A stretch of DNA of 64,000 bases from Trichosphaerium sp. ATCC 40318 (Eukaryota; Protista; Tubulinea). Location of the stretch: contig JALMLS010000440.1 in the NCBI GenBank assembly GCA_038496445.1, forward strand, positions 124,001-188,000. Direction: 5' to 3'. Of this stretch, positions 36 through 50,200 are shown piece by piece. Each line of letters opens with the position of its first letter. Position 1 is the stretch's first letter. Below the pieces are notes generated by a model. The model had not been told where the DNA came from. It saw only the letters and a program-made list of their open reading frames with translations, and searched no databases. The position numbers were made by a program, and so were the translations under genes.

Positions 36-380
36 TTTTGAAAGATGCTACGTGTATTTAAGATAGAGCGAGATAAAAAGTCATGCAAAATCTCTACCTT
101 GCTTTTTTTTTTAAAGTTCTCTTTTGTTACTAACAATATGTGTAGATTGGGAGCTTTGAAATGTTGTCTGATCAAGAATGCATTTACTTATTGTACTCAA
201 TCTAATGAGCCAGATACTTTATCTATACCTAAAGATAAACAGATGTACTGAGGTGGAGAGTATGTGAAATGTAACTTAAATTGGATTTAAAAAGGTACAA
301 ATTTATTTATAAACAGGTAAAGATGAATCCAATATGGTGTCTACTTGTTGTTCAACATAGACATAGATGTTATAAGCTTG

Positions 381-1304
381 CTAGGACCGACTGGTATTTA
401 GAAGTTGTACAGAGTCAGTAGTATATTGTAAGTTAACATGTAAACGCCATGTGCCTTTTGGAATATCAATGAGAAATACTGTATTGTTGAGCACCATTTT
501 AAGCTCCCTCTCTGTAAGTGTCAAGGTCACTGTATCATCTTTGAAGGCTATTAAACCTGGGCATTTCTTTACAGAATCCCCATTATGTACATATTTTCCT
601 GACCAACCATACGCGGCTTTATTAAGGAAAGAACGCCTTGATGGAGTTACACCAGCACTTATAATGCCTATAAACAGCCAATCTCTCGTTCCATGTATCT
701 TGAGCGTCCATGTTACATTACTTTCGAAACTATTAGATCCAAATGCAGCACAATAACTTGATGTCTTAACCTTTTGAACAAGAGTTGGTGCAACTAAAAT
801 TTCGCCAACTGAAGTATCAGCAGAAAACGAATCAGTCAAAGGAAGGCTCACTAGAGCAGGAATGATACCAAAGTAATCAACAAGTGCTGAAAAGTCTTTG
901 TCAACATTCTTCAGTTCAATCACTTTATGAAGTGGTTCTCCAGGTTGCATGGAAGCTGATCTGAGAGATCGTAGAATGACTGTAAAGTACTCTGGGTCAA
1001 CATCTAAAAAGATGATACCATTCTTGTCGAGAGTGTGTTTACCCTCCCACCGCCCACTGAACATGGTTTCGAGCATTGATCCTTGAACAACACATAAAGT
1101 ACGTCGCGTGGTTGTCATGAGTGTGCCGCCAACGTTTAGTTCTATCACATCCTCTGTAGTCGTTTTTGAAGCCATTTGTAATTTTTCGTTTTCAAACTGC
1201 TTTTTGGATGCTTCAAGCTCTTTTGTCTGCTTCACAACTAATTCTGTTTGTATTTTGAGAGCCTTGTTAAAGTGTTGGTACAGGTTCGTTAGTTCCTCAG
1301 CCAT
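381..1304 (-). CDS. Intronless coiled-coil + BTB/POZ (KCTD/T1-type) + SPRY/B30.2-like protein, 307 aa; putative Cullin3 adaptor
   Basis: BTB motifs VIELNVGGTLMTTTRRTL, SMLETMFSGRW and IFLDVDPEYFTVIL. The beta-rich C-terminus (WTLKIHG, WLFIGII, AYGW, DDTVTLTL, WRLHVNL) is typical of SPRY-like domains. Confidence 0.85.
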   Translation of the reverse strand: MAEELTNLYQHFNKALKIQTELVVKQTKELEASKKQFENEKLQMASKTTTEDVIELNVGGTLMTTTRRTLCVVQGSMLETMFSGRWEGKHTLDKNGIIFLDVDPEYFTVILRSLRSASMQPGEPLHKVIELKNVDKDFSALVDYFGIIPALVSLPLTDSFSADTSVGEILVAPTLVQKVKTSSYCAAFGSNSFESNVTWTLKIHGTRDWLFIGIISAGVTPSRRSFLNKAAYGWSGKYVHNGDSVKKCPGLIAFKDDTVTLTLTERELKMVLNNTVFLIDIPKGTWRLHVNLQYTTDSVQLLNTSRS

Positions 1305-1746
1305 TAGCGTGTTGGGTATGCCTCTGTTATTTACTTTAAAATATGGATCTGTATCAAGTTTGGCAGTCAGTTAATTCAACCCAGTTTTGGAGTAGCAGCT
1401 TTTAACTAAAACTTGGTTTTAGCCATACCTCATTCTAAGTATCCTAAGAATCAACAATTAGAAATTCCAGAGATTTCTACGGAATCTCCCTGAACCTACA
1501 ACTAAAAAAACGAATTGATAACTTATTTACCTATAACACCGTCTCTAGTTAATTCTATTACAGCTGTACTAAATATCAAGATGACAAGCAAGATAACAAA
1601 AAGAACAAAGAAAGTGAAAAGATGAACTTTTCTTAATGAGATTGTTGGACAATCATTGAACTAACATGTTCGATAAATCTAACAAATATACATCTGCTTT
1701 TTATCGTTTATTACAAAACTAACTGCCTTTTTTAGGGATTTTTTAC

Positions 1747-4700
1747 CTAGTACGTTCCAGTCTTCTTTTCTAGTTCAATAGGGTCACCAATATTATTAAT
1801 CAATTGATCCAACTGTGTTGCTTCAACTGCATGTCCATTTTCTTGTAAACTTTGTCTTACTTTTGACTTGTTCATATATATCTGCTTGTATACGTTTGCT
1901 AGTGCTATATCTTCTATATTCTCTGGTATAATAGCAGGTAAGAAGTCATCATCCTCTTGACGCTGTGGAGGCATTGTTGCGATATCATCAAAAAAGGCGT
2001 TAATACCATCTTGATTCTCGTCAATAAAGTCGTTCAATACGACCATGTATGGCTCTTTACCACCTAGTTTTATACTATTTGATAAACTCTGTAGTGTTTT
2101 TGTTATGAGCACAAAAACACGACGTGCTTCTTTTGATGGTGGGTGACGAGAAAGACCATAAGATTCAGGTAAATTTATAGCTGGATTGAAAAATCTCAAA
2201 AAGATGAAACCACCAATCGCTGTGTACTTAGAGTTTGGAAATCTATTATGTACTTCTCTTCCAAGATGAGTGCAAATAACACGAAACTCACTAAAAGAAA
2301 ATTTAAGCTTCATAGTTATGTGTAGTAAAGGTAAAAAATTTTCAACTTAAAAATACTTTTCCCGGTTTTTTCTTAATATTGTACGTACACTGGGACTTCA
2401 TCTAGAGATCTTATTATCGTTGAGAGTACTTTCTGAGCTGTTAATAGTAATTGATACTTATTAACACGGACATCTTCTTCGTCTGGTTTTATTACTGGAT
2501 CAAGTTCAAACGTGAAATCAGCTGCTTCTTCGCCTATGTGCAAAAAAAAAAAAAGTAAGAACAAACACTAAAAAAAAACTACATGGGTAACAAACCAAAT
2601 TAAAAAACGTGGTTCAAAAAAGAATATTCTATTAAAAATAGACGTATTTGGGCAACTGCTTTAGTCCAAAGTGAACGAAACAAGATAAATAAACATCAAA
2701 AAGGAAACAGCAAAAAAACAACTTTTTTTTGACAATTTTTTTCCAAACCGTGTACCTTTTGTACGTTCCATTAACAAGAATATATCATTACTTAAAGTAT
2801 TCCATAGATATTGTAATCCGACTAACTTTGAGTAGAACTTAAGCATCTTCGATGCCATCGAGTTTGATCTAAACAAAGTAGACTCCGAAGCTGCTCCGGC
2901 TACCTCATCTGAAATGAACTTTTTTATCAATCCAAGCGATCCTTCATGACTCTCGAACGTATAAACAAGTGCTTGAGCAACTGCATCTTGTTCTGTCGCT
3001 TTTGTAATGTCTACAATCGCACTTGCTATTTTTAGACTTTCATCCTCAACCAACATTCTTTTTAAGTCTTGTAGCATCTTTACACGTTCTGTATCTTTTT
3101 TGCTTACACGTGCATTCATAATAGCATTACCAAACATGATTGGTTCAAAGTTTGGCGGACCAGGTTTTCTCTAAACAGAGGAATAAGAACAAAGTCATTT
3201 TTTTCGGTTTTTTAGGCTTGATTTTCTCATAAAATTATTCAATGCAAGTCTTGCCTGTAAGATTGATCGATCAGAATCTCCTCTGTATTTGTAAATTATG
3301 AAGGCTATGATTAGAGCAATGATGATCAATATGATAATGATTGGTATCACAATAGGGATAACGTCTGGTGAGAAAAAGTTTTAGCAAGAAAGTTTTGTTA
3401 CAGAATTTGCTGAAACTACATCTACTTGCCTAAGCCGTCATCCGTTCCAGATCCTAGTACTGGGCATGTATCTCCTCTGACAAGTTTTGTAGAGCAATCC
3501 TCTGAAGAATATTAATGGCAACAATCTCACATTTAATTGTTTTTGGTATGCCTTGAAAAAAAAAGTACCTTGTTTCAAACACCTTGGTGTGCCTTCTTGA
3601 CACCATCCACATTGAATATTTGCAATACAATTACCACAACTAGCAAGAGCAGCACAACCTATGTTGATGGAAAAGTAAGTAACTCACATAGACAAATTTC
3701 TTCTTCGACTCAAAAAAAAATGTGCCTTCCAAAAATAGAGAAACTGTATTTCCTGTTACACCAATTGTGGCATTAGCCACTTGACCATTTTTTGTTTGGT
3801 TGATAAACTGCCCTGTAATAGCTAAACAAGTTGTTAGTACAATGACCACTAGTATACTCTTGGTACAACAACTACAATCAAAATACTAAAAATGAGAAAA
3901 AAAACAGAAAAAACTTTAAACGTGTTTTTTCACAAAAGACGTATTTGATACTTTCACAGTTTGGATGAATGCGTTTACTCTGACAAAAGTTTAAAAATAC
4001 TTACTGGTATTCGATGAGATAAGAACAAGTCTGCTCGTTTTGTTGAATGCTGTTGATATCGTTGGGACAATAACAATGCCTCCAGATATTTCAGCTCGTG
4101 TGGACGTAATAGTGTCGTATTCTGCTGGTAGCTCTCCGCCCACTTTATAATGGATCGTTCCTGTGTCTTCCTATAAGGTGGTATGTGAGAATCACAAACC
4201 GAGTTCTTTCAAAAAAAAAATTGGTATATGCAAACACCACGTGATAATGTTTAAACCTTTGTTGTTTTTACTATTTTTTAGAATGTAATAATTTTGATAA
4301 AATAGGGCTCTTTTGACAAAGAGAAGGGTACTCTGGAAAAAAGCTTTCCTCCTTGATAAACGAAGGTATGCGAAAAAAAATTGTTACTTCAATTTGACGT
4401 ACATTCTTCAATAGACCCCTAATATTCATTAAACGTCTTGGAGGAGGATCTACATCTGATGGCCCAACATGTAAGTTACCAGTATTGAATAGATCTCCAG
4501 TAAGTTCACCTTCAAGCTAAAACAAAACTGTTAACTTTCTTCCTTTTTACTCAAAAACAAAGCAAAAACATTGTTTCTTGGATTCCTGTTTTCTCGTACT
4601 TCAAGTGTGCCATTATTTCTAACTGTTGCTTCAATAGTACCATCAAATACTTTCATTGTTCCTTCTTGTGTTAGGGTACCATTAACACGAAGTGCAGTCC

Positions 4701-11695: not shown

Positions 11696-13699
11696 ATGCA
11701 AGCAGCTAAACTAGCGCGTGCTGTTACCTCTAAGAGCGCTTCGACTCATTTGCGTAAACCTCAGCAAGAATTATACGATTATCTGCAGAAAACGCCTAAT
11801 CCTGAATATGACGTTGTTAAAAAGCTTGTAAAGGAAGAAACTAAGGAGTTCAAGGGGTAAGCGAGTTAATCGAGCGTAAACTCACCATATCACTACATAA
11901 ATGACCTCTCTTCGCGTATTTAATGCATACGGACAAATATAAAAGCGTTTGACTCATAATTTTAGGCTTCTAAGCGACTGGCCTTCAGAACATGTTTTGA
12001 CGCCTTTGGAGCTTGTAAAACCAACGTACTCTCGCCATATATCGCTTTTGTTGGAGCATGGCGCCAATCCTCACAAATATCACAAAACCAACCCTATACT
12101 GTCTGCAATGCCTCACGATGAAGCGTTAAAACCATACGTCGATAACAAAGTTGATTTAACTTTTAAAGAAGACGGTAGAAGCCTCTACTTTGTAAGTTTT
12201 TTCTGTTCTTGAAGTGAAAGTTTATTGAGTGATAGGTTGATTGTGCTTCCTCAAACTTTTCTCAGCTTGGATACGCTAGAGTACCTCTAGCTCCTGATTC
12301 TAAAGGAGATTGGCCTTGGCATGTATGTCCTGGCAGTAGCCTAACAAGACAGTTTAGGTGCAGACATTTCGATTTGTCTTCAAAATCTCATGAGAACAAT
12401 ACTGTTCTCGACATTGTATTCGCACAGAGCCACTTTTACTCCTCGTTTATGAAGAGTACGTTCATTCTTCGGATTATACCCAATTTTTTGTCTTATCACG
12501 TGATTTAGATTTTTTTGAAATGTGGATACCATGGGACTTCACAACGAAGGATCAACCGCTTGCAACATATTTATTGAACAAAGACAAAGAATCGTTTATT
12601 GAAGCTAAAGATCAACTATCCATCGTATCAATATTTAAAATATTCAACGTAGCAAACGCATCAAAGTATTATGGTACTTGTACATCATGGAGTCTAATGG
12701 TTGCTATGGCGTTAAGAGATAAGACAGCTATTGAGTTTATAAAACCAAATATAACACGTGATATTGTTAAAACTGTTTTACCGAAAACAAAGCTTTCACC
12801 ACTTCATGTTGCTTATATGTCAAATTCAATGGATATTATACCAATAATAGAAGACCTTTCAGATGGTTTTAATGAACCTGACTCTAAAGGAAATACACCA
12901 GATGATTACGCAAGACTTTTTACTGTTGTAAAACCTGATTGTTTTACTGTTTTGTACAAAGGAAAGATTTACGAGATGGATACCCCAGATTTTGAGAAAT
13001 GGACTGGTGTTGAGATTACTTCTTATCCACATATACCTAATGAATTTTCATTTGAAGCAGGAAAGTTTCTTTTCGAACCACCTGAGTACGATGAAGAAGT
13101 AACAGAAAGTGGATCAGATCATCTTCCTTTTTTTAAAAGTTCTCATGTCGTTGATGCTAAGAATATACTCATTTCTTATATTAATCCTAAGTTCGAATTT
13201 GGTGCATTTGCCATGAGGAAGTTATCAAAAGGAGATTATGTCTGTTCTTATGGAGGAAAACTTACTCACAAAGACGCTCCTTTCAGAATTGACATGATCG
13301 AAGAAAAACAATCTTCTTATACTTTTCTTACTGGATCAGATGAGTGGTCTATTGATGGATCATATATGAGATCGCTAGGAGGGTTTATTAACCATTCACA
13401 AAAACCTAACCTTGAAGTACGTCTTTGAGTCCACAAGCAGTTGAAGCAAATTCCTGTTTTTTTCTCACGTTTAGTATCAGCATCCCTTGAACTTATTATT
13501 TTCTTCTTACTTTTTGTTTGTTTAGACACAGTATGTTTTTGATGGTGGGTTATGTAAGATTTACTTTACTGCAAAGAGAGATATAGAGCCATTAGAGCAA
13601 TTGTATATTGACTATGGCGAGCGTTACTGGAACAAAAACAATATGCCTTCAAAACCAAAGCTACATAAGCTATCACCACACTACCTGGAACAATTGTAA
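11696..13699 (+). CDS. Ankyrin-repeat + SET-domain methyltransferase
   Basis: Ankyrin motifs LLLEHGANP, LSPLHVAY and PDSKGNTPDDYA. SET motifs FGAFAMRKL, GGFINHSQKPNL and, in the last exon, FTAKRDIEPLEQLYIDYG. The start is inferred (MQAAKLARAV...). Confidence 0.8.
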
Positions 13700-13886: not shown

Positions 13887-14506
13887 TCAAAAAGGTTTTG
13901 TGTTTGAAGCTCCAAAAAAGTGAGTGTATTCAAGTTCTCCATTTTCAAACCATCTTTTTCCTTCACCTTGTACTCTACCTCCAACGTACATAAACTGGCA
14001 CATAAGTTGTCCATTAGAGTGCCATTCCTTGAAAGCGCCTTGTCCTTTGCCTTTAACAAATCTAACCTCTTTCTTCAGCTGGCCACTCTCATACCATTCC
14101 TTGTCCTCACCATGCCGTTTGTTGTCAACCCACATACTTTGCCAACTTAGCTGTCCATTTTCATGCCATTCCTTAAACTCACCATTTATTTTACCATTAA
14201 TCTTAAAGTAATGACTCTTACGTCTTCCACTCTTGTACCACTCTTTATGTAACCCATTCACTACATACAAATGAGTGTGTACCTCTCCAGTTTTATACCA
14301 CTTTATCCATAACCCTTTTCTTTTCAAAGTTTCATTAAAGTGAGTATTAATTGCTGCCGTCTTTGACAGAGTGTGAAATTTTGTGAATGCTTCCCTTGTG
14401 AAAGTAGAAATATACTCTTGAAGTTCACGTGGAATACCTAGTAGACCCAAAGAACCATTTTTGTGAGACCTTAAAGAAAAAAATGTCAGTCTTAACCAAC
14501 GTACAT
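13887..14506 (-). CDS. F-box-like N-terminus + MORN2 (YwqK-like) repeat protein
   Basis: LLGIPRELQEYI motif followed by repeats of GxxKEW(Y/H)xNGQL. The ATG is probably split AT|G by a 35-nt intron (14470-14504). Confidence 0.75.
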
Positions 14507-14828
14507 TATAATTGTTCAAATAGGCTATGGATTAAACCTCATTGTATGTAAGAAAACCACTTGTGATTATTACCGTACATGACAATAGCGTATTCAGATC
14601 AAAAGCTAAATATTTATCCAACCTTAGCTTTGAAAGTTGTAATAGTACGCTTTTTATCTTCTTCCAGTTGCTGTTGTAGTTTAACGCGAATATATAGTGT
14701 AACAATTACAACACGCGCGATGAATTCAGCTTTGACAAAAAAACGTTGTGGTTGAAGTAACATGACCACGTGATAAATTAAGATCCATATTTTAAGTAAA
14801 TAACGGGGCGGCATTGCCAAACGCGCTA

Positions 14829-15411
14829 ATGGCTGAGGAACTAACGAACCTGTACCAACACTTTAACAAGGCTCTCAAAATACAAACAGAATTAGTTGTG
14901 AAGCAGACAAAAGAGCTTGAAGCATCTAAAAAGCAGTTTGAAAACGAAAAACTACAAATGGCTTCAAAAACGACCAAAGAGGATGTGATAGAACTAAACG
15001 TTGGCGGCACACTCATGACAACCACACGACGTACTTTATGTGTTGTTCAAGGATCAATGCTTGAAATCATGTTCAGTGGGCGTTGGGAGGGTAAACACAC
15101 TCTCGACAAGAATGGTATCATCTTTTTAGATGTTGACCCAGAGTACTTTACAGTCATTCTACGATCTCTCAGATCAGCTTCAATGCAACCTGGAGAACCA
15201 CTTCATAAAGTGATTGAACTGAAGAATGTTGACAAAGACTTTTCGGCACTTGTTGATTACTTTGGTATCATTCCTGCTCTAGTGAGCCTTCCTTTGACTG
15301 ATTCGTTTTCTGCTGATACTTCAGTTGGCGAAATTTTAGTTGAACCAACTCTTGTTCAAAAGCTTATGATTTCTGGGCATTGTGCTGCATTTGGATCTAA
15401 TAGTTTCGAAA
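14829..15411 (+). pseudogene. 5' half of a second BTB-SPRY copy, cut at the inversion breakpoint (ORF reads on to 15482 in antisense MORN-gene sequence)
   Basis: Near-identical to 1304-721 up to tctaatagtttcgaaa, where homology stops abruptly. Confidence 0.85.
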
Positions 15412-15680
15412 TACACGTGACTTGTAATTTGTTGGGTATTGGTTTCACGTTCTTTTTTAATCCATTTCCCGTGTTTATTTAACTCACTATCAAACCTTGT
15501 TGTTATCGCTGTGTATTTTGATAACAAAGACCACTTTTGATAAACTTCAAAGCTTAAATCAACGAAATCAAGATGTAGTTCAAAAGGAAGACACAAAAGA
15601 AGACATTTCTTGGATATTATCTTAAAACTAGTTAGTCATAGTATGGCGTGATGAAACAGTACGTTGCATGTAGATGTCAT
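15408..15680 (-). pseudogene. 5' half of an F-box-like/MORN2 gene lying inside the inversion
   Basis: MTSTCN, a 42-nt intron (15621-15662, ACTAAC branch), then IISKKCLLLCLPFELHLDFV...LNKHGKWIK. Paralogous to 13887-14506 and 17071. Confidence 0.8.
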
Positions 15681-16030
15681 TTTTGAAGTTAATAAGATGT
15701 ATATGGCGTATTTAACAGATAACTAAAACAAGTCATTCAAAGTAAACAACTTTTTTTGCGAGCCTCTTTTGTTACTTACATTAGCTTATTGTAATACATT
15801 ATTTAAGTCATATGTTGTCTTATTCAACTACATACCTTTACTTTGTTCTTAATTTGTTGAGGATCCAAGTAAACAAACTTAATGAGGTGGAGAGTACCAG
15901 TGAAATGTAGGAATTCATTATTAGTCAATTAACTTAAAAATGGATTGAACCAAAAAGTCACATGTATTTGTAAACAAGTAAAGATTACCAATATGGTGTC
16001 TAGTTCTTCAACGTGTATGTTATAACATTG

Positions 16031-16368
16031 CTAGGACCGACTGGTGTTTAGAAGTTGTACATAGTCAGTAGTATATTGTAAGTTAACATGTAAACGCCAT
16101 GTGCCTTTTGGAATATCAATGCGAAATACTGTATTGTTGAGCACCATTTTAAGCTCCCTCTCTGTAAGTGTCAAGGTCACTGTATCATCTTTGAATGTTG
16201 TTAAACCCGGGCAACGCTTTCTAGAACCTCTAGCATATTCATGTTTTCTGTTCCAACCAAACGCACCCTTGCTATTGAAAGAAGTCCGTGTTGTTGGAGG
16301 TTGATCAGTGCTACAAACAGCCAATCGCTTGTTCCATGTATCTTGAGCGTCCATGTTACATTGCTTTC
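16031..16368 (-). pseudogene. 3' (SPRY) half of the second BTB-SPRY copy, inside the inversion, with a net 7-nt deletion frameshift
   Basis: Matches 381-725. There are 32 nt rather than 39 nt between the WLF and SF codons. Confidence 0.85.
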
Positions 16369-16806
16369 AAAAATGGTAAACGTAACGGAGATGCAAATAG
16401 TTGGTTTGAAAATGGCCAATTATTGGCTCAAAAGCAGTTTGTAAATGATAAACAACAAGGAGAGTTCAATAGGTTCTACAAGGATGGCCAATTGATGCAA
16501 AGTACTAATTACAAAGATGATAAACTACATGGAGAGTTTGAGTGGTTATACAATGATGGTAAATTATGTATAAAATGTATGTATTCCAATGGTGTACTAG
16601 AAGGAGATTCCAAGTCTTGGTATACCAATGGACAATTGAAACAGCAAAGCAATTATGTGGATAGTGAATATGAAGGGGAGTACAGATGTTGGTATAACAA
16701 CGGACAATTGAAACAGCAAAGAAATTATGTGGATGGTAAACTTGAAGGAGATTCCAAGTGCTGGTATTCAAATGGGCGATTGAAGACACTATCAAGTTTT
16801 GTTTGA
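16369..16806 (+). pseudogene. 3' MORN2-repeat half of the inversion-split F-box/MORN gene (still an open frame)
   Basis: Six 24-aa repeats of the type EGxxKxWYxNGQLKQQxNYVDG, with no start of its own. Confidence 0.8.
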
Positions 16807-17070: not shown

Positions 17071-17280
17071 ATGAGCTCTTCAAAATCGCAGTCTTGTTAC
17101 TTGTTAAACCTTCCAGTAGAGCTTCAGCTTGATATCATTGACTTGGCCATTAACGTGTACATACAATGGCCAATTCTTTGTAAACAGTCAGCAATGAGCA
17201 CAAGGTTTGATGACAAGCTTGATAAACACGGAAAGTGGATCCGGATACTTCATCAAGCTGAAGAGAAATTCACTAAAAAG
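17071..17280 (+). pseudogene. F-box-like N-terminal part of another family member, lacking MORN repeats
   Basis: LLNLPVELQLDII...TRFDDKLDKHGKWIR aligns with LLCLPFELHLDFV...TRFDSELNKHGKWIK. Similarity then ends. Confidence 0.65.
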
Positions 17281-18913: not shown

Positions 18914-21295
18914 ATGATGACTCGTTCGAAAACAAGGGCTGCAGCTAAAAAGTCTAGTTCCTTAGAACCAGAAGAACCAATTGAGAGTACGTACACAAAA
19001 CCTGAATTCAACGCGAGTCTTTTAATTAAGCAAAAATTATACTGCGCACATGGCAAGCAACGGTTTCCAACTAACTTACAAAGTAGCTTTGACTCTTCAA
19101 AAGTTGAAAGAAAAGTCATACAAGCAACTGAAAGCTATAGCGAATGATATACAGCTCAATGTGAGCGCCGTTTCAAAGGACACCTTGGCCGAGAAGATTT
19201 TCTACTCTACACGTACGCTTTTCACCTTTACCAGGTTTATCACATCAAACTTGTTTTTTATCTTATCAATCTAATTTTTTTTGTAGATAAAAGAACAGAG
19301 AAACAGCGCTCTATGGAGGGCCCAGCAGCTTTCAGCGAAGATGCACAGCGTAGAGCTGAGAATCAATTGTTGTCACAGGATTTGGTACGCGCTATGATTG
19401 CGGAGTCTGCTCGCGAGGCTAGGTCTGAATTCAATTCGAAAATACTGCAAATGAACATAGAACTTGAAGACCTACACACGAAACGTAAGGCTGATAAAGA
19501 GCTAATGGGCCGACTCGCCAAAAGGTGTAAGGCCACTGAGCAAACGGTGCTACATATAAATTTGTCACAGCGATCTCAGACGTTGTCAACGTACATAGAA
19601 CAAAGTACCTACCTGCTAACACTCCTAACAAATGCCACTAACAAATATCTTTTAGTTGAGCTTACAATCGGCAAGCGTTTCCTCGCTGTCGCTCTAACCC
19701 TTAAAGACGAGTTTGTTAGTACTGTCGTTAAAGTTCCTAAGGGCTTTTTACGAAAGAATGGGAAGTTACAAAAAAGCTGGGAGAAGGAGAAGGATTTCAA
19801 TGAAGATCTTCATTGTTGGTTTGCCAAACAGGAAAATGCTTTGCCATTTTTGAAAATTTATGACACGCACCTAAAGCCGTGTACTACGACAGGCACAAAA
19901 GACGTGTCAACCTCAAAACCTGACTTGTCTGTGCTACCTAAAGACACGTTTATTTTTGGAGTGTTACGGATAAGAACATATCACATGGCTTTAGTTTTGG
20001 AGCTAAAAGCTGGCAGTACGACAACTTTTTTTTCTGGTTTTTTTCCGTTCCTTTAACTTACTCATTTTCTTCAGATTCGTTCAGTACTACATCTGTAGGG
20101 CAAGCAGTAAAGTATGGGTTAACCATACTGCGTTCCCAAAAGCTTCGAACATTTGTGTATGTAGTACTTATGAACTACTCAAAAGTGATGATTATGAAAA
20201 TTGTCATGGAACAAGATGATGTTGTTCCATGGTATTACAAAGATATTATCCCATACAACAAAGGTGGCTTGAAACACCTATTTCAAGTTCTTCACCAATC
20301 GCCAGAAACCCTCGGCTATGTCACAAAGTTCTTCTACTACAAGAACCAAAGATATTCTCCTGAAAGATGTTGTGGCATCAGTTCATTTGCTACAGTCTAT
20401 GGTGTACCTGTTTCAGATGGTGAGGAAGGTATCCAAATAGTAGCAATAAAGGAGTTCAAAGACCTTCCTAATGTAAAGAATATGATAAAGAAGGAAGCAA
20501 GATATATGAACATCCTCGAGACACTTGACACTGTCCCAAAAGTGGTATGTTTTTTTTTCTTCGAAGTCTTTCCGTTCTAATTGTTTGTTAGCTCCAATGT
20601 ACGAACAAAACCATTGTAATGCAACCTGTTGGTACAAAGATTTACAACTTGGCAAGTATTCCAAACATCCAGGATTGGATTCGTCAAGTTGTAGAAACAC
20701 TTCGATTAGCACACAAGCGAGGGTTTATTCATCGGTGAGTTCAGTTTTGTTTTTCTTATTTGACATTTTCTTACATAATTTTAGGGATATCTCAACATCT
20801 AACATCCTGTTGTTTGAAGAAAAAGCTCTTGTCATCGATTGGGGAGCTGCTGTAGATATAGATACGGATGTGCTAACTGGAGGTGGATTTAAATACTGCA
20901 ATCTGCTCGTTTTGGAGAATTATGATCCGACAGTGATGATCTCTTATAGCGCTACCCATGACTTGTTCTCCTTTGTTCGTGTACTAATATACATGAAACT
21001 TATCCCGCAATGCCAAAGGGAAATAGATATAGCCTACACAGAATGGGTAGACGCCTTAAAGAGATACAGTTACGGTGCAGAAAAAGAAGTTGTAAAACGC
21101 AAGGCTTTTATAAACTGTTGGCAAAATAACACAAGTGCTCATACTTGGGATCCTAGCTTTGCTAAAGCATATGACGGAGACTATGATGGATTAATAGAGC
21201 AACTGTGTTTAGTTTTCGGAGGAGTTATTAAGCGCTGTGTTCATTGTAACTCTCAAGGATTTTGTAAACATAGAAGAGATAAATTTACAAAATAA
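18914..21295 (+). CDS. HeH/SAP-like + coiled coil + PD-(D/E)xK nuclease-like + protein kinase (Crinkler/CR-effector or FunK1-like architecture)
   Basis: LKEKSYKQLKAIANDIQLNVSAVSKDTLAEKI; KPDLSV..VLELK..VGQAVKY; kinase GISSFATVY, VAIKEF, spliced FIHR|DISTSNIL, IDWGAA and HDLFSF. Confidence 0.75.
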
Positions 21296-21737: not shown

Positions 21738-22604
21738 ATGCAAAAAGTGAGTAAATACACGTATTTAGACAGCTCTTATTAACACGTGCAGATTTTGCTT
21801 GCGATGATTGCTTTCATTCTTTGTAGTGTAGCTCTTGGAGGTATCTACAAGGCTACTGGTGGCGTAAGGCAATTCGAAAAAGGTAATCCATGTGCACAGG
21901 ACTACGCATGGTTTATAGAGCAAGCCAATAAGAAAGGTTAGACCCTTTGTAACTAATATCAAAACGGTATTAAAGAGGGTCAATATAAAGAGTGGCATAA
22001 AAATGGTCAATTGAGATATGACTATTATTACCTCAATGGTGATATTAATGGACCATACAAAGCGTTTCGCAACAATGGACAATTAAAAATGTCTTGTCAC
22101 TACATCAATATTAACGGTAAACCCAAACTACAAGGGCAACGCAAAAGCTGGTATGTAAGTGGTCAATTATGCGAACAATCAAACTACATTAATGGTAACC
22201 GTGAGGGAGAGTCGAAACACTGGTATAGATTTGGTCTACTTTACGAGCAATGTCAATTTGCCAATGACAAACTTAATGGAGAGAAGAAGTCTTGGCATAT
22301 GAACGGACAACTATTACGCAAGTGCCATTATACTAATGGTAAACGAGAAGGAGAGTACAGAGCGTGGTATAATAATGGGCAATTAAAGAAGGTGTGCCAA
22401 TATGTCAATGATAAATAAGAAGGAGAGTACACTAGTTGGTATGAAAACGGAAAATTGTACGAAAAGTGCATGTATGTCAATGATAAACGAGAAGGAGAGT
22501 ACAAAAAGTGGAACGAGAATGGTATTGACAACACAAAGATAGAATGGCGCTTTTATATTGATGGTAAGTGCTCTGATAAAGGCACTGATTACAGGGCTTA
22601 TTAA
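21738..22604 (+). pseudogene. MORN2-repeat sequence (21957-22604) with an internal TAA at 22416-22418, preceded by signal-peptide-coding exons
   Basis: The repeats continue in frame past the stop to TAA 22602-22604. Upstream exons MQK|ILLAMIAFILCSVALG... can splice in frame through 21937-21975. Confidence 0.6.
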
Positions 22605-22666: not shown

Positions 22667-23940
22667 TCATGAGCCTATCAATGAGAGCAGCTTAGATGGT
22701 GTACGCTTAAGTTTAGGGTTATTCACTATCATTGTACCAATACTATTGGTCCTATAAATAAACCTTGTCAATGGAGAGTACTTAACAGTTTTTTGCAAAT
22801 ACTTATTTTTAAAGTACCTGATGAGACGAGGTCTCTTTTTCTTTCCTTTTACAGTGAACACACTACCACGCTTTTTCTTTACTTTGACATTTGACATGTG
22901 GATCTTATGTTTGTCGTGTTCAATTGTATTACGAACAATAAACTTAACAACAATCACTTGTTTTTCTTGACCGATTCTAAGAAAGAAAAGGAATTTGTAA
23001 GAAACCAGTTTAAAGTGTAGGGAAATAAACTATGTACCTATAAGCACGACTAATAGCCTGACCTTCAGTGGCTTCGGCTTCAGTTTTTGAACTAGATACG
23101 GGATCTGAAATGTATAAGTAAAAAAGTAGTGTGCACAAAAAAACTTACCAATAAGCACAACATATTCGGCTTCAATAAGGTTTATACCACTTGCTGCAGT
23201 TTCGGAGGATAACAAAATTACCTTGAAAATACCATTGTGAAACTCTTCAATCGCTTGATTCTTTTGCTTAGCAGTTCTAAAAAGCAGATAAGCCACAAAG
23301 CCAAAGTAATAAAAAACCTGTAAATTTTTTTTCATACCCAGCTATTTTTGTTGCTAGAATGCCATTCTCAAACAAAAGGCGTGAAACCTGTGATAGTACT
23401 TTACTATACTTTGAAAAAATGATAACATGAACATCAGGTTCACGACGGAATAGATCAACCATGAAATATAAAATATGACCCAACTTTGTGCCGTAAATCA
23501 CTATAGCTTCCTCCAAGATTAAGTCTTTGAACCCAGTTGTAGGCATTGACTTGTTCTACAAGAGTTATTAGGTATAGCAAGGGTGATAAAATCAAACAAG
23601 TTATGTACTTCTGAATAAGTCCTCCTGCTCAATAATTTTAGCAAGTTTATCTCGTGCGTCTTTATCACTATCAAAAGAGATGAATCTAAAAGTAAGTGCT
23701 TCTTTCACTTTGTCAATTGGAGACTCCAATGGACCAATGTCATATAAAGGCAAAGCCTTTTGTTTAATACAGGATATATCCAAGTCCTTCTAAAGAGATT
23801 TGTGTATTAGCAAACAGTCATTGAAGAAAACTGGAAACCAAAAAAAAAAATACAACTTACTAGTGGCTTAACATTAGCCAAGATAAACTTTTCGAAGATT
23901 GGAATAGTTCGCCCAAGGTACGGTATTTCAGCTTTAATAG
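22667..23940 (-). pseudogene. 3' fragment of a RAD5/RAD16-like SNF2 helicase (helicase C-terminal domain only)
   Basis: YGTKL, VIIFSKY, VILLSSETAASGINLIEAEYVVLIDP, EGQAISRAYRIGQEKQVIVVKFIVRNTIE. There is no N-terminal ATPase half, an apparent frame break near 23495-23560, and the sequence switches to BTB-cassette DNA at about 23990. Confidence 0.7.
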
Positions 23941-23992: not shown

Positions 23993-24260
23993 TGTTTATA
24001 AATAAATTTGTATCTTTTTACTCTCCTACATTTCACCCATACTCTCCACCTCATTACATCTGTTTAAATTTAGGTATAGATAAGGCATGTGGTACAGTGC
24101 TGTTTAAAGATACTACAGTAACCTTGAAGCTCACAGAGAGGCAGCTTAAAATGGTTCTCGACAAAAAGGAATGGTGTATTGGCATTCCAAAAGGCTCTTG
24201 GCGTTTACGTTAATTTACACTAACGACTCTGTGGACCTGCTAGAATCTAATCAGTTATAG
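23993..24260 (+). pseudogene. Third BTB-SPRY remnant: 3'-flank DNA followed by a frameshifted SPRY C-terminus
   Basis: 23993-24090 matches the reverse complement of about 215-316. 24100-24260 encodes FKDTTVTLKLTERQLKMVL..IPKGSWRL. Confidence 0.7.
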
Positions 24261-32833: not shown

Positions 32834-33923
32834 CTACAGTACAACTAAAGACAACCAAGCAACACAAGAAAAAACTATTAATACGATACTAACAGAATTC
32901 AGTTGTGTTGAAGAAGTAGGTGCTGCAGTTGTAGGCGTAATTGTTGGTGCTTCTGACAGTGACGTTGATGCTGTTGGAGAAGTTGTTTGACTAGGTGGCA
33001 TTGTTGTTTGTGAGAGTGTTGGTGGAACTATTGTGGTTGGTGGGATCGTTGTTGTAGGTAGTGTTGTTGGCAGTAAAGTTGTTGGTGGGAGTGTTGTCGG
33101 TGAAAGTGTCGTAGGAGGTAATGTCGTAGGCGGTAGTGTTGGAGGTAGGGTTGTTGGAGGGAGAGGTAATTTTTGAAGTATTATCTTTCTGAATCCACGT
33201 GAGTCGTTATTAGTAATAGTTGTACCACACCTGTTTGATACAATTAGCATGTGGTATCAAACCAAACTACAAACAAGAACGTACCTCCAACCACCTATGA
33301 GGAAATGGAAACATAATTTCTTATTTAACTGTCCGTCCGCGTTGCCATCACACGTATTAAGGTTAATTGTATTTACAGGTGTGAACCCAATTGATCTTTC
33401 GCCACGATACCAATATGCACCATTTATAAAAGTTTGGGTTTCTGACTCCTCAAATGGTGCTATATCCTGTGTTAAGACTTCTGTACTTCCAATTGCTTGT
33501 AAAAGAGTAAGTTTGAGAGTGGGACAAGTTAATAAACAAGCTTCAGTTCGCACAAGGATGTCGAATACAAGAAACTTGTTTCCTTCTTTTTTTCAAGTCT
33601 TTTACTTTTACACGTACCATAGACGATAAAGTTATTATCACTGCCAACACACCCCATGAGAGTCATTATGTCTTCCTGTGTTGAGCATTGAGCTAATTCA
33701 GAATCTATATCTGCTCCCCATCGAACATTCACGCAAGGCGTCCAATCAGCATAGTCACTTAGAGAGTCTTTGTTAACTTGAATGCCAGTAACTGGATAAT
33801 TAAGCTGGCATACTGAATTCTGAACCTAGGCCAATGTTAACGCATGATTTATCGACCTTGGTGATCTACACGTACGTGTATAAAGAGTATGAGAATACTT
33901 GAAACAAAGAAGAGCTTCATCAT
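32834..33923 (-). CDS. Secreted Cys/Trp-domain + short PPTTL mucin stalk protein, copy 1, with a hydrophobic GPI-type tail
   Basis: MMKLFFVSSILILFIH signal; 4 exons; NGAYWY..SIGF..LCFH..GGWRCG domain; ends SIVLIVFSCVAWLSLVVL*. Confidence 0.8.
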
Positions 33924-34269
33924 GTTGAGTTGTAAGTAGTTTAAGGTTGTGTACTGAATACTGTACTTTTTACATAAAAACTGCTGTCGTTTTATGATTT
34001 TCTAAAAATGTAGCGTTGCTATGAGGTCATTATAGTAGCGAGAGTATGAGTTACAAGTATTTATAACATCTGAAAATCCAACAAACAATTGGTAGTATTT
34101 GTCTTGTGATTTCGGCAACGAAACTGCAGTATTTTATTTGTGCGTCTCTCCACTGTCTTTGAGTGTTGGTGTTCCTATCAGGAGTTGACCCACACTTCTT
34201 TCTTTGCAGGTTGATAAATAAACGCTCCATCACGTCAGATTACACGGAAAATTTTGTCGATAGATCACG

Positions 34270-36347: not shown

Positions 36348-36909
36348 GCGTATTTACGTGTGTACAACAAGTGGCACTGCTTAGCAAAATTCGCTCTAAT
36401 AGGAATTTGGTAAATGTAGAGCTGACATCGTTTTTTTCATTTACAGGTTGGTTGATTTATTGCTACATGCGACGTGACTATGAACGATGTATAAAGAAGA
36501 ACATCCAAAAACTAGTCAGCGTTTCAAACGCTAACAAATTGGATAGTTCCTGTTAGGATCTATTGTTGCAATACGTTACCATTTTAAAACAGTACATTGA
36601 GCTAGTGACATTGACATCAGACATTGCTGTAAGCTTTCTTTTGAAAAACAGTAAAAAGCTGTCCATCATTAGACGCTTGTTTGTCGCAGTAAGGTAGAAC
36701 TTTACAATTCACCATTTTAGTTCTGTATTGAATCAGACCGTGCAAACTGAGAACATTGCAGCCAATCCCTAAAGGCCTACAATACGTAGGTCAAATCAAG
36801 TACACGAATCTAAATAAAAAGACAAAATCTAGCGGTTTAGACTTCACAAAAAGGTATTTCGAAATCACGTGTGCTGTTCTTTACAATATTTTACAATTTC
36901 TTAGCTCAA

Positions 36910-38662
36910 ATGGTTTTCGGTGTCTCCCATGTTTTCTTGATAGCGACGCTACTATCTCTCATTACGCCATGTTACAGCGCTTGTTACAGTACTCCTGATT
37001 CTATTATTGGTCTCTACAAGTTCAGTAATGCCGATAATTTATCCATGAATTCAATCAGCAATTCAAGCTTTGTTTCTCGTTTTACATCAATGCCTACCAA
37101 CATACAGGTAAATAATAAATAACACATAACATTTTTGTGCTAATTGGGACGTTATCTTCAACTCTTTGAAGGTTACACCCGTAATATCAGTTGAAGAACC
37201 AAAATTTGTAGTTTATTTGTTGTTTATTAAAAAAGATCAGTGTCACGTGCTCCGAAAACTCCGTCTGGACAGTTTTTGTATTTTTACATTGTAGGTAACA
37301 TACTACATAGGGATACGTGGGTAACGGCGTACGACTTGAAGGATCCGGGGCGTTTGAAATAAATATTGGCGCTGAAGAATTCGTCCCATTCAGTGCGTTA
37401 GAATCACAAACTGGAACAATAATTTATGTAAATCTCTTTAGCGGACTTCTCTGTTGAGTTCTGGTTCAGACTGCTTTCTAAACCGACTCAAAACAGCACA
37501 CTATTCGCCCTCTACAATGTCACTGGTGTACTAGCATACATCTCATCAGAAGGCCATTTGACAACACATTTTAATACCAACAGCGGTCCAAGTTCTACAA
37601 ACTTAGTGTATCCTGATTTGGTTGATGCAACATGGCATCATTTTGCAATTACCTACTCGAGGCAAGCCAAGAGTTAATATCTATTCTTACCACGTACAGG
37701 ACCAACTCCAGGGTTATTTTTTTCTTTGATGGTGACTTTGGTGGTGGCAATATAGCAGTGTGTTGTATGTTTCATACAGCAAGCCCACTTGAAATTGGAA
37801 ACATGCTTAACGTCGAAATTGACGAAGTACGTTATAGCCACACTGTTCATTATCCATTAACAATCTATACAGGTATCATATTATAATAAAACACTGAGCA
37901 CAAACGATGTATTGAGTATCTTTGTAGCAGGTTCAATTGAATTTTACTAAAGCAACTTGACTTGAAGTTATGATACCACTAGCTGACTCTAATGTTGTTA
38001 GGAAACGATGGTAAATGGATGCCTGGATCACCTTCAACCAATTCGCCAATCGCTCTACCCCCTGAACCGATGCCGGTTGGTGTACAAGTAGAATCTTCTC
38101 GTAAAGTTGTCACACTTGAATCATTTGGAGCGACATGTTCAAATAACACTTTTTGTGTTTTCTTTAACCAAAATGTCGCATTGACTGGAGAGTTAGACTT
38201 GCGTGGCATTACCATTAATGTACAAGGTGCGTACATACTTATAAATATGTTGTTGATATTAATGCTATGTCTCTACCCTTTAGGAAACATCTCATTCAAT
38301 AGTGCGATAATCACAGTTGATGAGAATACAAGAATAACTGTTGAAGGATGTACTTCTTTTGGTACTCTCACAGTTACAGTTGATTCTGTTGTTAATGGAT
38401 TTGAATTATTTAACTCTAATTCATTCTGTGATGAATCTTCAGTTGAGGATGTATTGGTCAAGCGTGCTTCTGGTTGCTCATCACTAAAATCAGGTACAGT
38501 ATTTTTTGATTGTTAGAATACGTGTTTATTGTATTTGTAGAATTGTCTTCTACACGTGCTCTATTTTTTATTGGAGATATATTCCCGTGTACTTCAGGAT
38601 CTATTCAATTGTATAGTTCTCTCATATTTATGATACTGCTACTTGTGTTGCTGTTGCAGTGA
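36910..38662 (+). CDS. Secreted LamG/concanavalin-like + beta-rich stalk protein with GPI-type tail, copy A
   Basis: Signal MVFGVSHVFLIATLLSLITPCYS; DFSVEFW, WHHFAITY, FFFDG and IDEV motifs; hydrophobic end LIFMILLLVLLLQ*. Confidence 0.8.
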
Positions 38663-39640
38663 TAACACAAAGTATTTTGTATATGCATTTTGCTGTACAA
38701 GAATGTTGGCTTTTATGTTTCTAGCTTGGACTAAGTTTGTAGCAAATATAAGTATAAATCACAATCAAGCTTATGATTTACTACACTGTTTTGATAGCCT
38801 TTTTTCTCTTTTTTTGATATTCTGACTATTTACAGCTGAGAGTTGGCTCTGAGTTGATAGTAGGCGCTGATACTTGCTCATTAAGGACCTTAATATCCTT
38901 AGGGCATTTTGAGCATGAGGAGGTAGTATAGCATCGCTTGATCGAAGGTTGGGAGTTGCGCTGATGTTTATACTGACGCCCATATTACGACGTGTGCGGC
39001 CTCTAACGGAGTGTCGATAGCCATTCGAATTGAACTGGCGCTTGCGACCATGTGAATTATCAACACCAGAGGGACCACGGAGTTCACTAAGTAATTCTGG
39101 CACAATCTGAGGTGTACCCTTTTTGCTGTGATTTACCTTGACTGAGTATTGAATACGTCAGTGCTACTAAATAAACAGTTATTTTAACCTGCATCTACGA
39201 CGTACCTTAAATTTGCGTTCCGTATTAAAACCAGAAATCTAGACCAATCTTTTTCATTGAATTCGCGACAATACACTAACATTTATAAATTGCCATTTAA
39301 TATTCGTAAATACAGGAATAATGTTTACCGTGTAGACTATGGCATGGTGAGGTCTTTTTAAAGTACAACAGATGTTAACTGAACAATTCGTAATAGCAGT
39401 AAATAGCTACTATGTTTGTACTACCCAACTATGTCTGGTTCTACATACACTATTAAAAGCTCTTATGAAGTACCATAGTTCCAAAATATGCAAAACATTT
39501 TGACCAAAAATGAGAACTTCAACTTTATTGTCTATCACACAGAGCGTGCATAGAGGTACATGCGTGTTGATTCTTGTCAACCAATATTGATTATTTGTTG
39601 CTACGTCAGAATAGTATGCGTAGGGTATTGAGTAGGTTGC

Positions 39641-46299: not shown

Positions 46300-49200
46300 A
46301 AGATTTATTTGCATTTACAAAAGTACTTCGTGTTATCACTGCAACAGCAACACAAGTACCAGTATCATAAATGTAAGAGAAGTATACAATTGAATAGATC
46401 CCGAAGTACACGGGAATATATCTCCAATAAAAAATAGAGCACGTGTAGAAGACAATTCTACAAATACAATAAACACGTATCCTAACAATCAAAAAATACT
46501 GTACCTGATTTTAGTGATGAGCAACCAGAAGCACGCTTGACCAATACATCCTCAACTGAAGATTCATCACAGAATGAATTAGAGTTGAATAATTCAAATC
46601 CATTAACAACAGAATCAACTGTAACTGTGAGAGTACCGAAAGAAGTACATCCTTCAACAGTTATTCTTGTATTCTCATCAACTGTGATTATCGCACTATT
46701 GAATGAGATGTTTCCTAAAGGGTAGAGACATAGCATTAATATCAACAACATATTTATAAGTATGTACGCACCTTGTACATTAATGGTAATACCACGCAAG
46801 TCTAATTCTCCAGTCAATGCGACATTTTGGTTAAAGAAAACACAAAAAGTGTTGTTTGAACATGTCGCTCCAAATGATTCAAGTGTGACAACTTTACGAG
46901 AAGATTCTACTTGTACACCAACCGGCATCGGTTCAGGGGGTAGAGCGATTGGCGAATTGGTTGAAGGTGATCCAGGCGTGTATTTGCTATCGTTTCCTAA
47001 CAACATTAGAGTCAGCTAGTGGAACAAAACTTCAAGTCAAGTTGCTTTAGTAAAATTCAATTGAACCTGCTACAAAGATACTCAATACATCGTTTGTGCT
47101 CAGTGTTTTATTATAATATGATACCTGTATAGATTGTTAATGGATAATGAACAGTGTGGCTAAACGTACTTCGTCGATTTCGACGTTAAGCATGTTTCCA
47201 ATTTCAATTGGGCTTGCTGTATGAAACATACAACACACTGATGTAATATTATCACCGCTATGGTTACCATCAATGAAAAAAATAGGCCTGGAGTTAGTGC
47301 TGTACGTGGTAAGAATACATATATAATATCTCTTGGCTTGCCTGGAGTAGGTCACAGCGAAATGATGCCATTTTGCATCAACCAGATCAGGAGTCAAATC
47401 GAATGAAGAACTTACAAACCTGTTGGTATTAAAATGTGTTGACAAACGACCAGCTGGTGAGATGACTGCCAATATACCAGTGATATTGTGGAGGAAGAAT
47501 AGAGTACTATTTTGAGTCGGTTTAGAAAGCAGTTGGAACCAGAATCCAACAGAGAAATCGGCTAAAGAGATTTACATATTAATGTTGCTGTTTGTTTCCA
47601 AATGTAACAGTTCTAACGTACTGAATGGGGCGAATTCTTCAGCACCAATATTTATTTCAAACGCCGCGGATCCTTCAAGTCGTACGCCGTTACCCACGTA
47701 TCCCTATGTAGTATGTTACCGACAATGTAAAAATGCAAAAACTGTCCAGACGGAGTTTTTCGGAGCACGTGATGTGATGTTTTGAAATAAACACAAAATA
47801 AACTACAAATTTCGGTCCTTCAACTGATAGTATGGGTGTAATCTTCAAAGAGTTGAAGAAAATGTTCCCAATTAGCACAAAAAACTTGATATTTACCTGT
47901 ACGTTGGTAGGCATTGATGTAAAACGAGAAACAAAGCTTGAATTGCTGATTGAATTCATGGATAAATTATCGGCATTACTGAACTTGTAGAGACCAATAA
48001 TAGAATCAGGAGTACTGTGAGAAGCGCTGTAACATGGCGTAATGAGAGATAGTAGCGTCGTTATCAAGAAAACATAGGAGACACCGAAAACCATTTGGCA
48101 ATTAATTGAGCTATTGTAAAATATTGTAAAGAACTGCACACGTGATTTCGAATTACCTTTTTGTGAAGTAGTTTCAACGGCCAGATTTTTCACTTTTTTT
48201 GGTCGCATACTTGATTTGACCTATATACGGTTTCCGGAATATTTCACTTCCAACACTGTTGCTATCTAACTTGGCAATTGCAACAGCAATCAACAATATC
48301 GGTATGCAATTCACCAAAGTTTTCTTAGATCCACAGGTGTGGCTAGAATAAGGCACTGTCGTCCAAGATATATCCCTTATAGACTGCAATGTTCGTGCTA
48401 GAATTTTAATAAGTAGCAACGAAATATATCTGTGAACGTTACTAACACTGGATTTATAGCCCGACGGTACCTTTCCAGTATTAGGTAAATTTACTGCGTT
48501 CGAGTGGAGCCATAGCCTTAATAACTAATATCATTCATCCTAACAGGAACTCCCAAAATCGTGTTAGTTTTCGATAGTTTGTATTTTCTTCTTAATATAC
48601 TTCACAATCATGCTGCAAGATCCTTGACTCCTATTGTAGCTTTCAAATAAATGTTAATTAATAGCACACTGTGGTATTGCCAACTTTAACAATGGAGGCA
48701 ATACTAAAACAAAAGACAGATTCATGTAAAACGCACAAGTGTCTATAGTCTAAAATTACACGTGTCTAAACGATTACTAATGGAAACAGAGATGTATTGA
48801 AGCTTTGAAAGTTTTTGTTGTATTGGACAAACTAAATAATGATACGTAAGTTCCAACTTGATCGTTCATAGGCATGTAGCAAGTACGAATCAACCAACTC
48901 GTAAAATGAAAAACCAATGTCAGCTCTACATTCACCAAATTCCTATTATGTATTAGACACTAGCGTACGGCAATCAACAAACAGGTCACAATTATAAAGG
49001 CAAAGTAAAAAACTAAAAAGAGATACGCATGGTTAGTTAAAACAATAGACTTCTGCGCCTATTCCTAGCCACGTGATCTATCGACAAAATTTACGTGTCA
49101 CCTGACGTGATGGAGCGTTTATTTATCAACCTGCAAAGAAAGAAGTGTGGGTCAACTCCTGATAGGAACACCAACACTCAAAGACAGTGGAGAGAAAAAC

Positions 49201-50200
49201 AGAGCTTACACCATCAAAATTTGTAGTTTCTTTGACGAAATCACATCACAAATACTATCAATTGTTTGTTGGATTTTCGGATGTTACAAATACTTGTAAC
49301 TCATACTCTCACCACTATGATGACCTCATAAACAACGCTACATTTTTAGAAAATAATAAAACGGCAGCAGTTTTTTGTAAAAAAAGTACAGTATTCAGTA
49401 CACAACCTTAAACTACTTACACCTCAACATGATGAAGCTCTTCTTTGTTTCAAGTACTCTCATACTCTTTATATACGTACGTGTAGATCACCAGGGTCGA
49501 GAAATCATCCGTTAACATTGGCCTAGGTTCAGAATTCAGTATGCCAGCTTAATTATCCAGTTACTGGCATTCAAGTTAACAAAGACTCTCTAAGTGACTA
49601 TGCTGATTGGACGCCTTGCGTGAATGTTCGATGGGGAGCAGATATAGATTCTGAATTAGCTCAATGCTCAACACAGGAAGACATAATGACTCTCATGGGG
49701 TGTGTTGACAGTGATGACAACTTCATTGTATATGGTACGTGTAAAGTAAAAGACTTGGAAAAAAAAAAGGAAACAAGTTTCATTTTATTCAACCTTGTGA
49801 TAACTGAAGCTTGTTTATTAACTTGTCCCACTCTCAAACTTACTCTTTTACAAGCAATTGGAAGTACAGAAGTCTTAACACAGGATATAGCACCATTTCA
49901 GGAGTCAGAAACCCAAACTTTTATAAATGGTGCATATTGGTATCGTGGCGAAAGATCAATTGGGTTCACACCTGTAAATACAATAAACCTTAATACGTGT
50001 GATGGCAACGCGGACGGACAGTTAAATAGGAAATTATGTTTCCATATATTTGTAGGTGGTTGGAGGTACGTTCTTGTTTGTAGTTTGGTTTGATACCACA
50101 TGCTAATTGTATCAAACAGGTGCGGTACAACTATTACTAATAACGACTCACGTGGATTCAGAAAGATAATACTTCAAAAATTACCTCTCCCTCCAACAAC
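46300..50200. repeat. Right arm of the inverted segmental duplication
   Basis: Reverse-complement homology to 33150-38690, minus a roughly 2.1-kb block. Confidence 0.9.
46336..48094 (-). CDS. LamG/GPI surface protein, copy B
   Basis: Same exon structure as copy A. The stalk exons are nearly identical and the LamG exons have diverged. Confidence 0.8.

Follow-up and report, generated by a model that had tools for sequence, protein, structure and literature searches.

How does a locus come to hold a BTB-only reading frame, an F-box-like reading frame that runs into it from the opposite strand and a severed array of MORN2 repeats, and does such an arrangement represent a single accident, one position of a switch or an error of amplification or assembly? 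The locus in question lies within a stretch of 64,000 nucleotides (contig JALMLS010000440.1 of GenBank assembly GCA_038496445.1), referred to in its entirety as the window. It comprises two neighbouring genes, one encoding a KCTD-type BTB domain followed by a SPRY domain (copy 2, whose intact paralogue, copy 1, is found near the start of the window) and the other an F-box-like N-terminal module followed by MORN2 repeats. The arrangement is probably the outcome of one balanced inversion, mediated by microhomology and fixed in at least the haplotype that was assembled, within a fast-turnover cluster full of decayed members.

The inverted segment and its joints

Copy 1 provides the colinear reference against which the rearrangement of copy 2 is revealed. 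When the region was compared with the window by blastn, positions 14781-15411 were found to match copy 1 positions 1350-722 on the opposite strand at 95.6% identity, and positions 15930-16372 to match copy 1 positions 272-729 on the same strand at 81.3% (E 1e-122). Because the two matches differ in strand, the halves of copy 2 run in opposite directions when set against the intact copy 1. What the two matches have in common is exactly TTTCGAAA, the palindrome that copy 1 retains at 722-729, as had been predicted. Once 15408-16368 had been flipped by script, copy 2 could be aligned colinearly with copy 1 across the joint, where there are zero indels. The uninverted order is considered ancestral because colinear BTB and SPRY proteins of approximately 320 amino acids (aa) are widespread in eukaryotic assemblies, where they occur as unnamed proteins of 30-35% identity, often in tandem arrays.

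The left joint reads agTTTC/GAAAtac at 15407/15408 and the right joint tgcTTTC/AAAAatg at 16368/16369 (the stroke marking the joint), and the microhomology at the ends of the segment amounts to exactly 4 bp (GAAA...TTTC) in inverted orientation, or 7 of 8 positions when the flanks are counted. An exact 961-bp inversion with these joints and this degree of likeness between the two sites had been put forward in the original prediction, and was upheld by the sequence itself, by the blastn comparison with copy 1 and by the flipped alignment. In a simulation on the window, microhomology of at least 4 bp was encountered in 2.1% of 200,000 random breakpoint pairs, such that the microhomology exceeds chance to a modest degree, yet for one event only. 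No contig in the viral and metagenome collections contains the 31-mer leading into the left joint. An inverted match of 15 nt, with a single mismatch, also exists between 15409-15423, at the end of the F-box-like exon, and 15955-15969, in the 3' flank of the SPRY half; as a mediator of the inversion it was ruled out, both arms being situated inside the segment. The coordinates of all features are collected in Table 1.

Table 1. Position, strand and character of the features of the rearranged locus, its intact paralogue and the flanking genes (positions are those of the window)
Feature	Position	Strand	Remarks
Inverted segment	15408-16368		961 bp; 953 bp excluding the 4-bp terminal inverted repeats GAAA/TTTC
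Left joint, palindrome TTTCGAAA	15404-15411		Breakpoint can be placed anywhere in 15408-15411 because of the 4-bp microhomology
Right joint TTTCAAAA	16365-16372		7 of 8 positions match the left site in inverted orientation
Copy 1, intact BTB_2 and SPRY paralogue with short flanks	272-1350	-	Coding sequence 381-1304, 307 aa; TTTCGAAA at 722-729
Copy 2, BTB-SPRY 5' part	14829-15407	+	Coiled coil, KCTD-type BTB, linker and first SPRY strands; aa 1-193
Copy 2, SPRY 3' part and 3' flank	15930-16368	-	Net -7 nt frameshift; last 107 codons form the reading frame 16031-16354
F-box-like N-terminal exon, LPxELxLD...KHGKW module	15408-15635	-	Frame open from 15635, no in-frame ATG
Former intergenic and 5' region of the F-box-like/MORN gene, inside the inversion	15636-15929	-	May hold a micro-exon (speculative)
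MORN2 repeat array	16369-16806	+	145 aa plus stop; severed from the N-terminal exon
New 23-aa hydrophobic tail and stop of the truncated BTB reading frame	15408-15482	+	Antisense of the F-box-like exon
New 23-aa tail and stop of the truncated F-box-like reading frame	15336-15407	-	Antisense of the BTB-SPRY gene
RasGAP exons; SET-domain reading frame; helicase C-terminal fragment	1747-3137; 12520-13428; 23030-23546	-; +; -	Ordinary spliced genes flanking the cluster

Of the 307 residues of the BTB-SPRY protein, the break leaves the first 193/194 in place; it falls between strands of the SPRY beta-sandwich. Within the SPRY half, the 7-nt frameshift of the original prediction was recovered as a 10-nt deletion combined with a 3-nt insertion (net -7), located in a divergent patch some 55-90 nt past the joint, roughly at 16270-16315, and the gene consequently remains frameshifted even after flipping. 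The lower identity of this half was traced to two localised divergent patches. Synonymous divergence (dS) between the two copies is 0.09 over aa 1-200 and 0.08 over the final 65 codons; such similar values on both sides of the break argue for one duplicated gene, later split by one event. Separate duplication histories for the two halves, as 81% against 96% identity might suggest, were therefore rejected, the divergence being confined to the two patches and dS being alike. Homology between the copies is limited to the BTB-SPRY gene and its short flanks, about 1.08 kb in total. As far as sequence homology reaches, copy 1 is thus a duplicate of the BTB-SPRY gene alone and not the paralogous two-gene cassette for which it had been taken.

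Domains, reading frames and truncated products

The BTB_2 domain (PF02214) scores 34.9 bits in copy 1 and 34.1 bits in copy 2, above the Pfam cut-off of 21.4, and a profile of the family matches the BTB structures of SHKBP1, KCTD16, KCTD9, KCTD7 and KCTD5 with E values from 5e-21 to 1e-11. By its BTB_2 domain and its C-terminal SPRY domain, copy 1 resembles the KCTD/SHKBP1-type (T1) BTB proteins and the SPRY-bearing BTB or SOCS-box proteins that serve as substrate adaptors of cullin-RING ligases, cullin binding being putative here; it differs from them in that the Pfam SPRY model finds no match in it. A 68-sequence profile searched against solved structures nevertheless matched the SPRY chains of TRIM9, TRIM67 and HERC1 (E approximately 2e-6 to 3e-5), and the AlphaFold model of copy 1 (predicted local distance difference test, pLDDT, 83) matched the SPRY domains of SPSB3, Ash2L, RanBP9/10 and TRIM67 with a probability of 1.0 and target TM-scores of up to 0.72. 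The C-terminal domain of copy 1 is accordingly confirmed as SPRY by profile and by predicted fold. The MORN2 repeats are equally well supported, MORN_2 (PF07661) scoring 91.3 bits at 16288-16803 against a cut-off of 29.6.

The third domain label of the original prediction, the F-box, fared differently. Neither Pfam F-box model (PF00646/PF12937) was found in the exon, in the paralogous exon at 17071 or in nine full-length homologues at E values of up to 1. A 19-sequence profile of the module returned nothing meaningful against PDB sequences, its structural model (pLDDT 65, a low confidence) gave no Foldseek match, and a PHROGs test gave no support either. The N-terminal module is therefore called F-box-like here on account of its LPxELxL motif alone, the F-box label itself, for which otherwise only its use in the literature (PMC10521059) argues, being not confirmed. 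From their domain types, both genes would encode substrate adaptors of cullin-RING ligases.

The F-box-like exon and the MORN half were searched separately, and the joined protein was built in local scripts from the window coordinates. The exon alone (75 aa) retrieved 27 proteins, which range from 61 to 1795 aa but mostly have 144-247 aa; all of the 18 that were read carry an N-terminal LPxELxLD...KHGKW module followed by MORN2-type repeats, and Pfam MORN_2 was present in each of nine homologues scanned. The flipped junction aligns without a gap to 12 full-length transcript-derived homologues (one of which, P0135, is on record only from JGI/IMG) as well as to a paralogue within the window at 13887-14519, from which it follows that the second gene is restored at codon resolution. 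The right junction lies inside the first MORN repeat, where the TTC of the microhomology codes for an aromatic residue that is conserved. Used as the query, the MORN half found distant relatives only (30-45% identity, mostly bacterial YwqK-like proteins) and hence offered no template for the junction. The claim that flipping regenerates both genes to the nucleotide accordingly holds for the BTB-SPRY joint, the only one at which such exactness can be checked, while the F-box-like/MORN joint is verified at the level of codons.

The restored F-box-like/MORN frame is free of stops, as originally predicted, although it spans 221 codons from stop to stop rather than 222 and contains no methionine before residue 119. 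The only start that the open reading frame (ORF) finder offers in the F-box-like exon is a bacterial TTG at 15596, and an ATG at 15606 is out of frame. Upstream of the exon, an ATG at 15680, a GT donor at 15662, a branch-point-like ACTAAC and a TTTTAAG acceptor at 15621 are present; speculatively, the ATG and the donor would delimit a first exon of six codons, in phase with the F-box-like exon and separated from it by an intron of 42 nt. The main exon of the paralogue at 13887-14519 (region 13887-14560, minus strand) likewise lacks an in-frame ATG, and both genes display an upstream ATG, a GT donor, a branch-point-like CTAAC or CTGAC and a TTTTAAG acceptor, a shared pattern that suggests a tiny first exon. 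Since a spliced six-codon first exon could supply the start, the missing ATG was not relied upon as proof of a dead gene.

As assembled, the truncated BTB ORF extends from the ATG at 14829 to the stop at 15482 and encodes 217 aa, the native 194 being followed by a new hydrophobic stretch of 23. It is convergent with the F-box-like ORF, which ends at 15336, and the two overlap by 147 bp, in agreement with the original prediction. A chance ATG at 16336 would yield a MORN-only ORF of 156 aa. The breaks fall inside the SPRY sandwich and the first MORN repeat and not at domain borders.

Given that these truncated frames exist, the possibility that the inversion is real and happened once, but that its BTB-only and F-box-like-only products were kept as decoys or dominant-negative partners of intact paralogues, deserves consideration. 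A BTB-only protein would be an oligomerisation and possible cullin-binding module that lacks its SPRY. The 217-codon BTB ORF is uninterrupted and has retained its ATG together with the region upstream of it, and the differences of the BTB part from copy 1 are mostly synonymous (about 11.5 synonymous and 8.5 non-synonymous), giving a ratio of non-synonymous to synonymous divergence (dN/dS) of approximately 0.2, compared with approximately 0.8-0.9 for the SPRY part, in both cases from small counts. KCTD-type BTB domains are, moreover, oligomeric in solved structures matched by the family profile (KCTD5, KCTD16 and SHKBP1). Against this, the counts of differences are small, and dN/dS integrates the time before the inversion as well as the lineage of copy 1. 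The truncated forms have no close transcript or protein in a collection of 5.8 billion proteins, the best BTB match being 53% identical, and the new tails are arbitrary antisense read-through. Retention as decoys is accordingly judged to be unlikely.

A single event weighed against a switch and an artefact

In the ancestral state, two neighbours on the same strand would have stood head to tail, the KCTD-type BTB and SPRY gene being followed by the F-box-like and MORN2 gene, and the first of these (copy 2) would be a recent duplicate of the gene at 381-1304. A balanced inversion of about 0.96 kb, with breaks after codon 193/194 in the SPRY beta-sandwich and inside the first MORN repeat, would then have exchanged the 3' part of the first gene for the 5' part of the second, the ends being rejoined via the 4-bp inverted microhomology GAAA/TTTC (7 of 8 with flanks). 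The outcome would be two ORFs, one with the BTB domain only and the other with the F-box-like module only, together with a MORN array left without a promoter, the SPRY remnant being further frameshifted by a net 7 nt. Such a short inverted microhomology points to microhomology-mediated end joining, to illegitimate recombination between very short inverted repeats or to a replication template switch, none of which calls for a recombinase. The inversion relative to the ancestral order, its joints, the microhomology and the frameshift are established by the sequence comparison; we infer that the event occurred once, was repaired by one of these routes and left products that are pseudogenes or at most truncated decoys.

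Signs of turnover are met elsewhere in the cluster. An F-box-like exon at 17071-17280 (plus strand) ends at a GT donor-like site with no adjoining MORN array, and a MORN array at 21957-22568 (plus strand), 4.7 kb downstream, carries in-frame stops and has no F-box-like exon; together they may constitute another disrupted family member. A truncated SPRY fragment of about 50 aa at 24055-24207 (plus strand) is 53% identical to copy 1, and the 43-nt stretch preceding it (24024-24207 with the fragment) matches the 3' flank of the BTB-SPRY genes, which marks it as a rearranged pseudogene piece.

The balanced micro-inversions of eukaryotes that are mediated by microhomology, through alternative end joining or through fork stalling and template switching/microhomology-mediated break-induced replication (FoSTeS/MMBIR), resemble the present case in their sub-kb to kb size, in their few bp of inverted microhomology, in the lack of a recombinase or long repeats and in breaking genes arbitrarily inside domains. 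What sets the present case apart is its unusual cleanness: at the one joint open to a nucleotide-level check, bases were neither lost nor gained (the pathway itself being unreadable from one sequence). It also happens to cut, in one step, two neighbouring genes whose presumed roles are similar.

In contrast to the fixed, one-off event that it preferred and that the evidence favours, the original prediction had also entertained a programmed, reversible inversion at TTTYGAAA sites, toggling two substrate adaptors together. Such a switch would be in keeping with the exactly reciprocal exchange, with the 7 of 8 likeness of the sites in inverted orientation, one of them being a palindrome, and with the stop-free flipped F-box-like/MORN frame. 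Yet the 'on' orientation still leaves the BTB-SPRY gene frameshifted, the exact match is of 4 bp only, and no inverted repeat beyond the 8-mer links the joints. TTTCGAAA is not meaningfully enriched in the window, occurring 5 times against 2.2 expected, with two of the occurrences being the paralogues and 8 of 100 shuffles reaching 5; copy 1, moreover, carries the identical palindrome and is uninverted. No recombinase, integrase or transposase was detected in Pfam scans of 28 window ORFs, which covered long ORFs only and are hence incomplete for a spliced genome, and the host is a eukaryote with spliced genes. Hin, Gin/Cin, FimB/E and the shufflons of bacteria and phages likewise swap the ends of coding sequences by inversion, an exchange that could toggle two states; they nonetheless own a dedicated recombinase, inverted repeats that measure some 10-30 bp or longer and two functional states, whereas here one gene is frameshifted either way, in a eukaryotic host and with 4 bp of exact homology. 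The programmed switch thus fails on every point at which it can be tested and is regarded as exceedingly improbable. Were the inversion unfixed, it could be a polymorphism, recurrent or reversible, of a multinucleate amoeba and would then jointly disable or restore two adaptor genes, or it could create BTB-only and F-box-like-only decoys that modulate intact paralogues, a reading that we consider very unlikely.

A further alternative concerns the DNA itself, namely that the true order is uninverted and that the inversion arose by whole-genome amplification or assembly, for instance by template switching of phi29 polymerase at short complementary sequences during multiple displacement amplification (MDA). 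The closest relatives of both the BTB-SPRY and the F-box-like/MORN family are transcriptome proteins of 47-65% identity, several of them under MMETSP, and two could be assigned to a marine amoeba, Trichosphaerium sp. ATCC 40318 (MMETSP0405). The draft genome of Trichosphaerium sp. has a GC content of 37.69%, close to the 34-44% of the window, and was assembled with Canu from Nanopore and PacBio reads of whole-genome-amplified nuclear DNA (PMC10521059), which would bear on the window if it comes from that assembly; two proteins of the window, looked up by exact sequence in public assemblies, gave no match. In inverted MDA chimeras the joined sites usually lie under 5 kb from each other and are bridged by short overlaps, mostly of 5-8 nt (PMC9984789), and the distance of 961 bp with a 4-nt (7 of 8) overlap would fit one such junction. 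An MDA chimera is, however, a single inverted junction in a single molecule, whereas two exactly reciprocal junctions are found here in an assembled consensus; a second, precisely reciprocal switch would be needed in the same molecule, and the chimera would then have to outvote the normal reads. The frameshift and the divergent patches are also independent of the joints. An artefact is for these reasons held to be improbable.

The single, fixed inversion is itself subject to several reservations. It is read from one assembled sequence, from which fixation, polymorphism and artefact are not directly separable, and end joining does not typically yield a balanced inversion as clean as this one, with no base lost or added at the joints. 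The dN/dS of the BTB part is 0.2 and its 217-codon ORF is uninterrupted, and the flipped F-box-like/MORN frame is stop-free; with these frames intact, decay is demonstrated for the SPRY half only. The low dN/dS of the BTB part may, on the other hand, reflect selection that preceded a recent inversion.

The surrounding window and the meaning of the rearrangement

The GC content of the window is approximately 36% overall (range 34-44%, mostly 35-39%), long ORFs are scarce, the RasGAP gene shows intron-like interruptions, and neither a tRNA scan nor an Rfam scan of the whole window returned a match; taken together, these features indicate eukaryotic nuclear DNA, and the relatives of the two gene families make an amoebozoan origin likely. 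The Pfam families found over the 28 ORFs were BTB_2, MORN_2, SET, RasGAP, Helicase_C and EGF_3, and the SET-domain ORF, used as the query of a homology search, found no relatives. Kinase-like ORFs are located at 19313-21295, between the F-box-like exon at 17071-17280 and the MORN2 array at 21957-22568. Further along, arrays of a 15-nt tandem repeat with a strong C skew are found at 53067-55278 and 50190-50555; they also score as periods of 45 and 60, and translation of the minus strand gives a pentapeptide repeat, V-V-G-G-S/N/K, over about 400 codons. Two large pairs of inverted repeats were additionally noted, one between 36907-38678 and 46320-48097 (a 703-nt piece of 97% identity and others of 82-99%, the arms being separated by about 7.6 kb) and the other between 33092-33980 and 49372-50258 (410-469 nt at 93-94%, about 16 kb apart). 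Both resemble inverted segmental duplications, and their ORFs are without a Pfam match.

Distant relatives of the BTB-SPRY gene at about 34% identity were also observed on contig CATKWK010002129.1 of another eukaryotic assembly, GCA_949826985.1 (400848-413903), where three or more BTB_2 genes stand in tandem beside a reverse-transcriptase ORF, which indicates that the BTB_2 and SPRY family has been tandemly expanded elsewhere too. Among the virus-like genes of Trichosphaerium, F-box and MORN are the most common domains (PMC10521059). The F-box and MORN proteins described from Trichosphaerium and giant viruses in the same study have the two-part layout seen here, which recurs in many transcripts, one of them traced to MMETSP0405; the present gene is distinguished from them by an N-terminal module that is unconfirmed as an F-box and by having been split through inversion.

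The rearrangement is thus an ordinary structural change of a known kind and involves no new mechanism. If the assembly derives from amplified DNA, the locus would serve as a test case for recognising amplification artefacts and as a check on assembly quality. It likewise carries a warning for annotation, as the ORFs with BTB only, F-box only or MORN only each represent half of one of the two rearranged genes. For the family itself, the locus presents a clean and fully resolvable case of a sub-kb balanced inversion that truncated two adjacent genes at once in a fast-turnover BTB-SPRY and F-box-like/MORN family of an amoebozoan-like genome.

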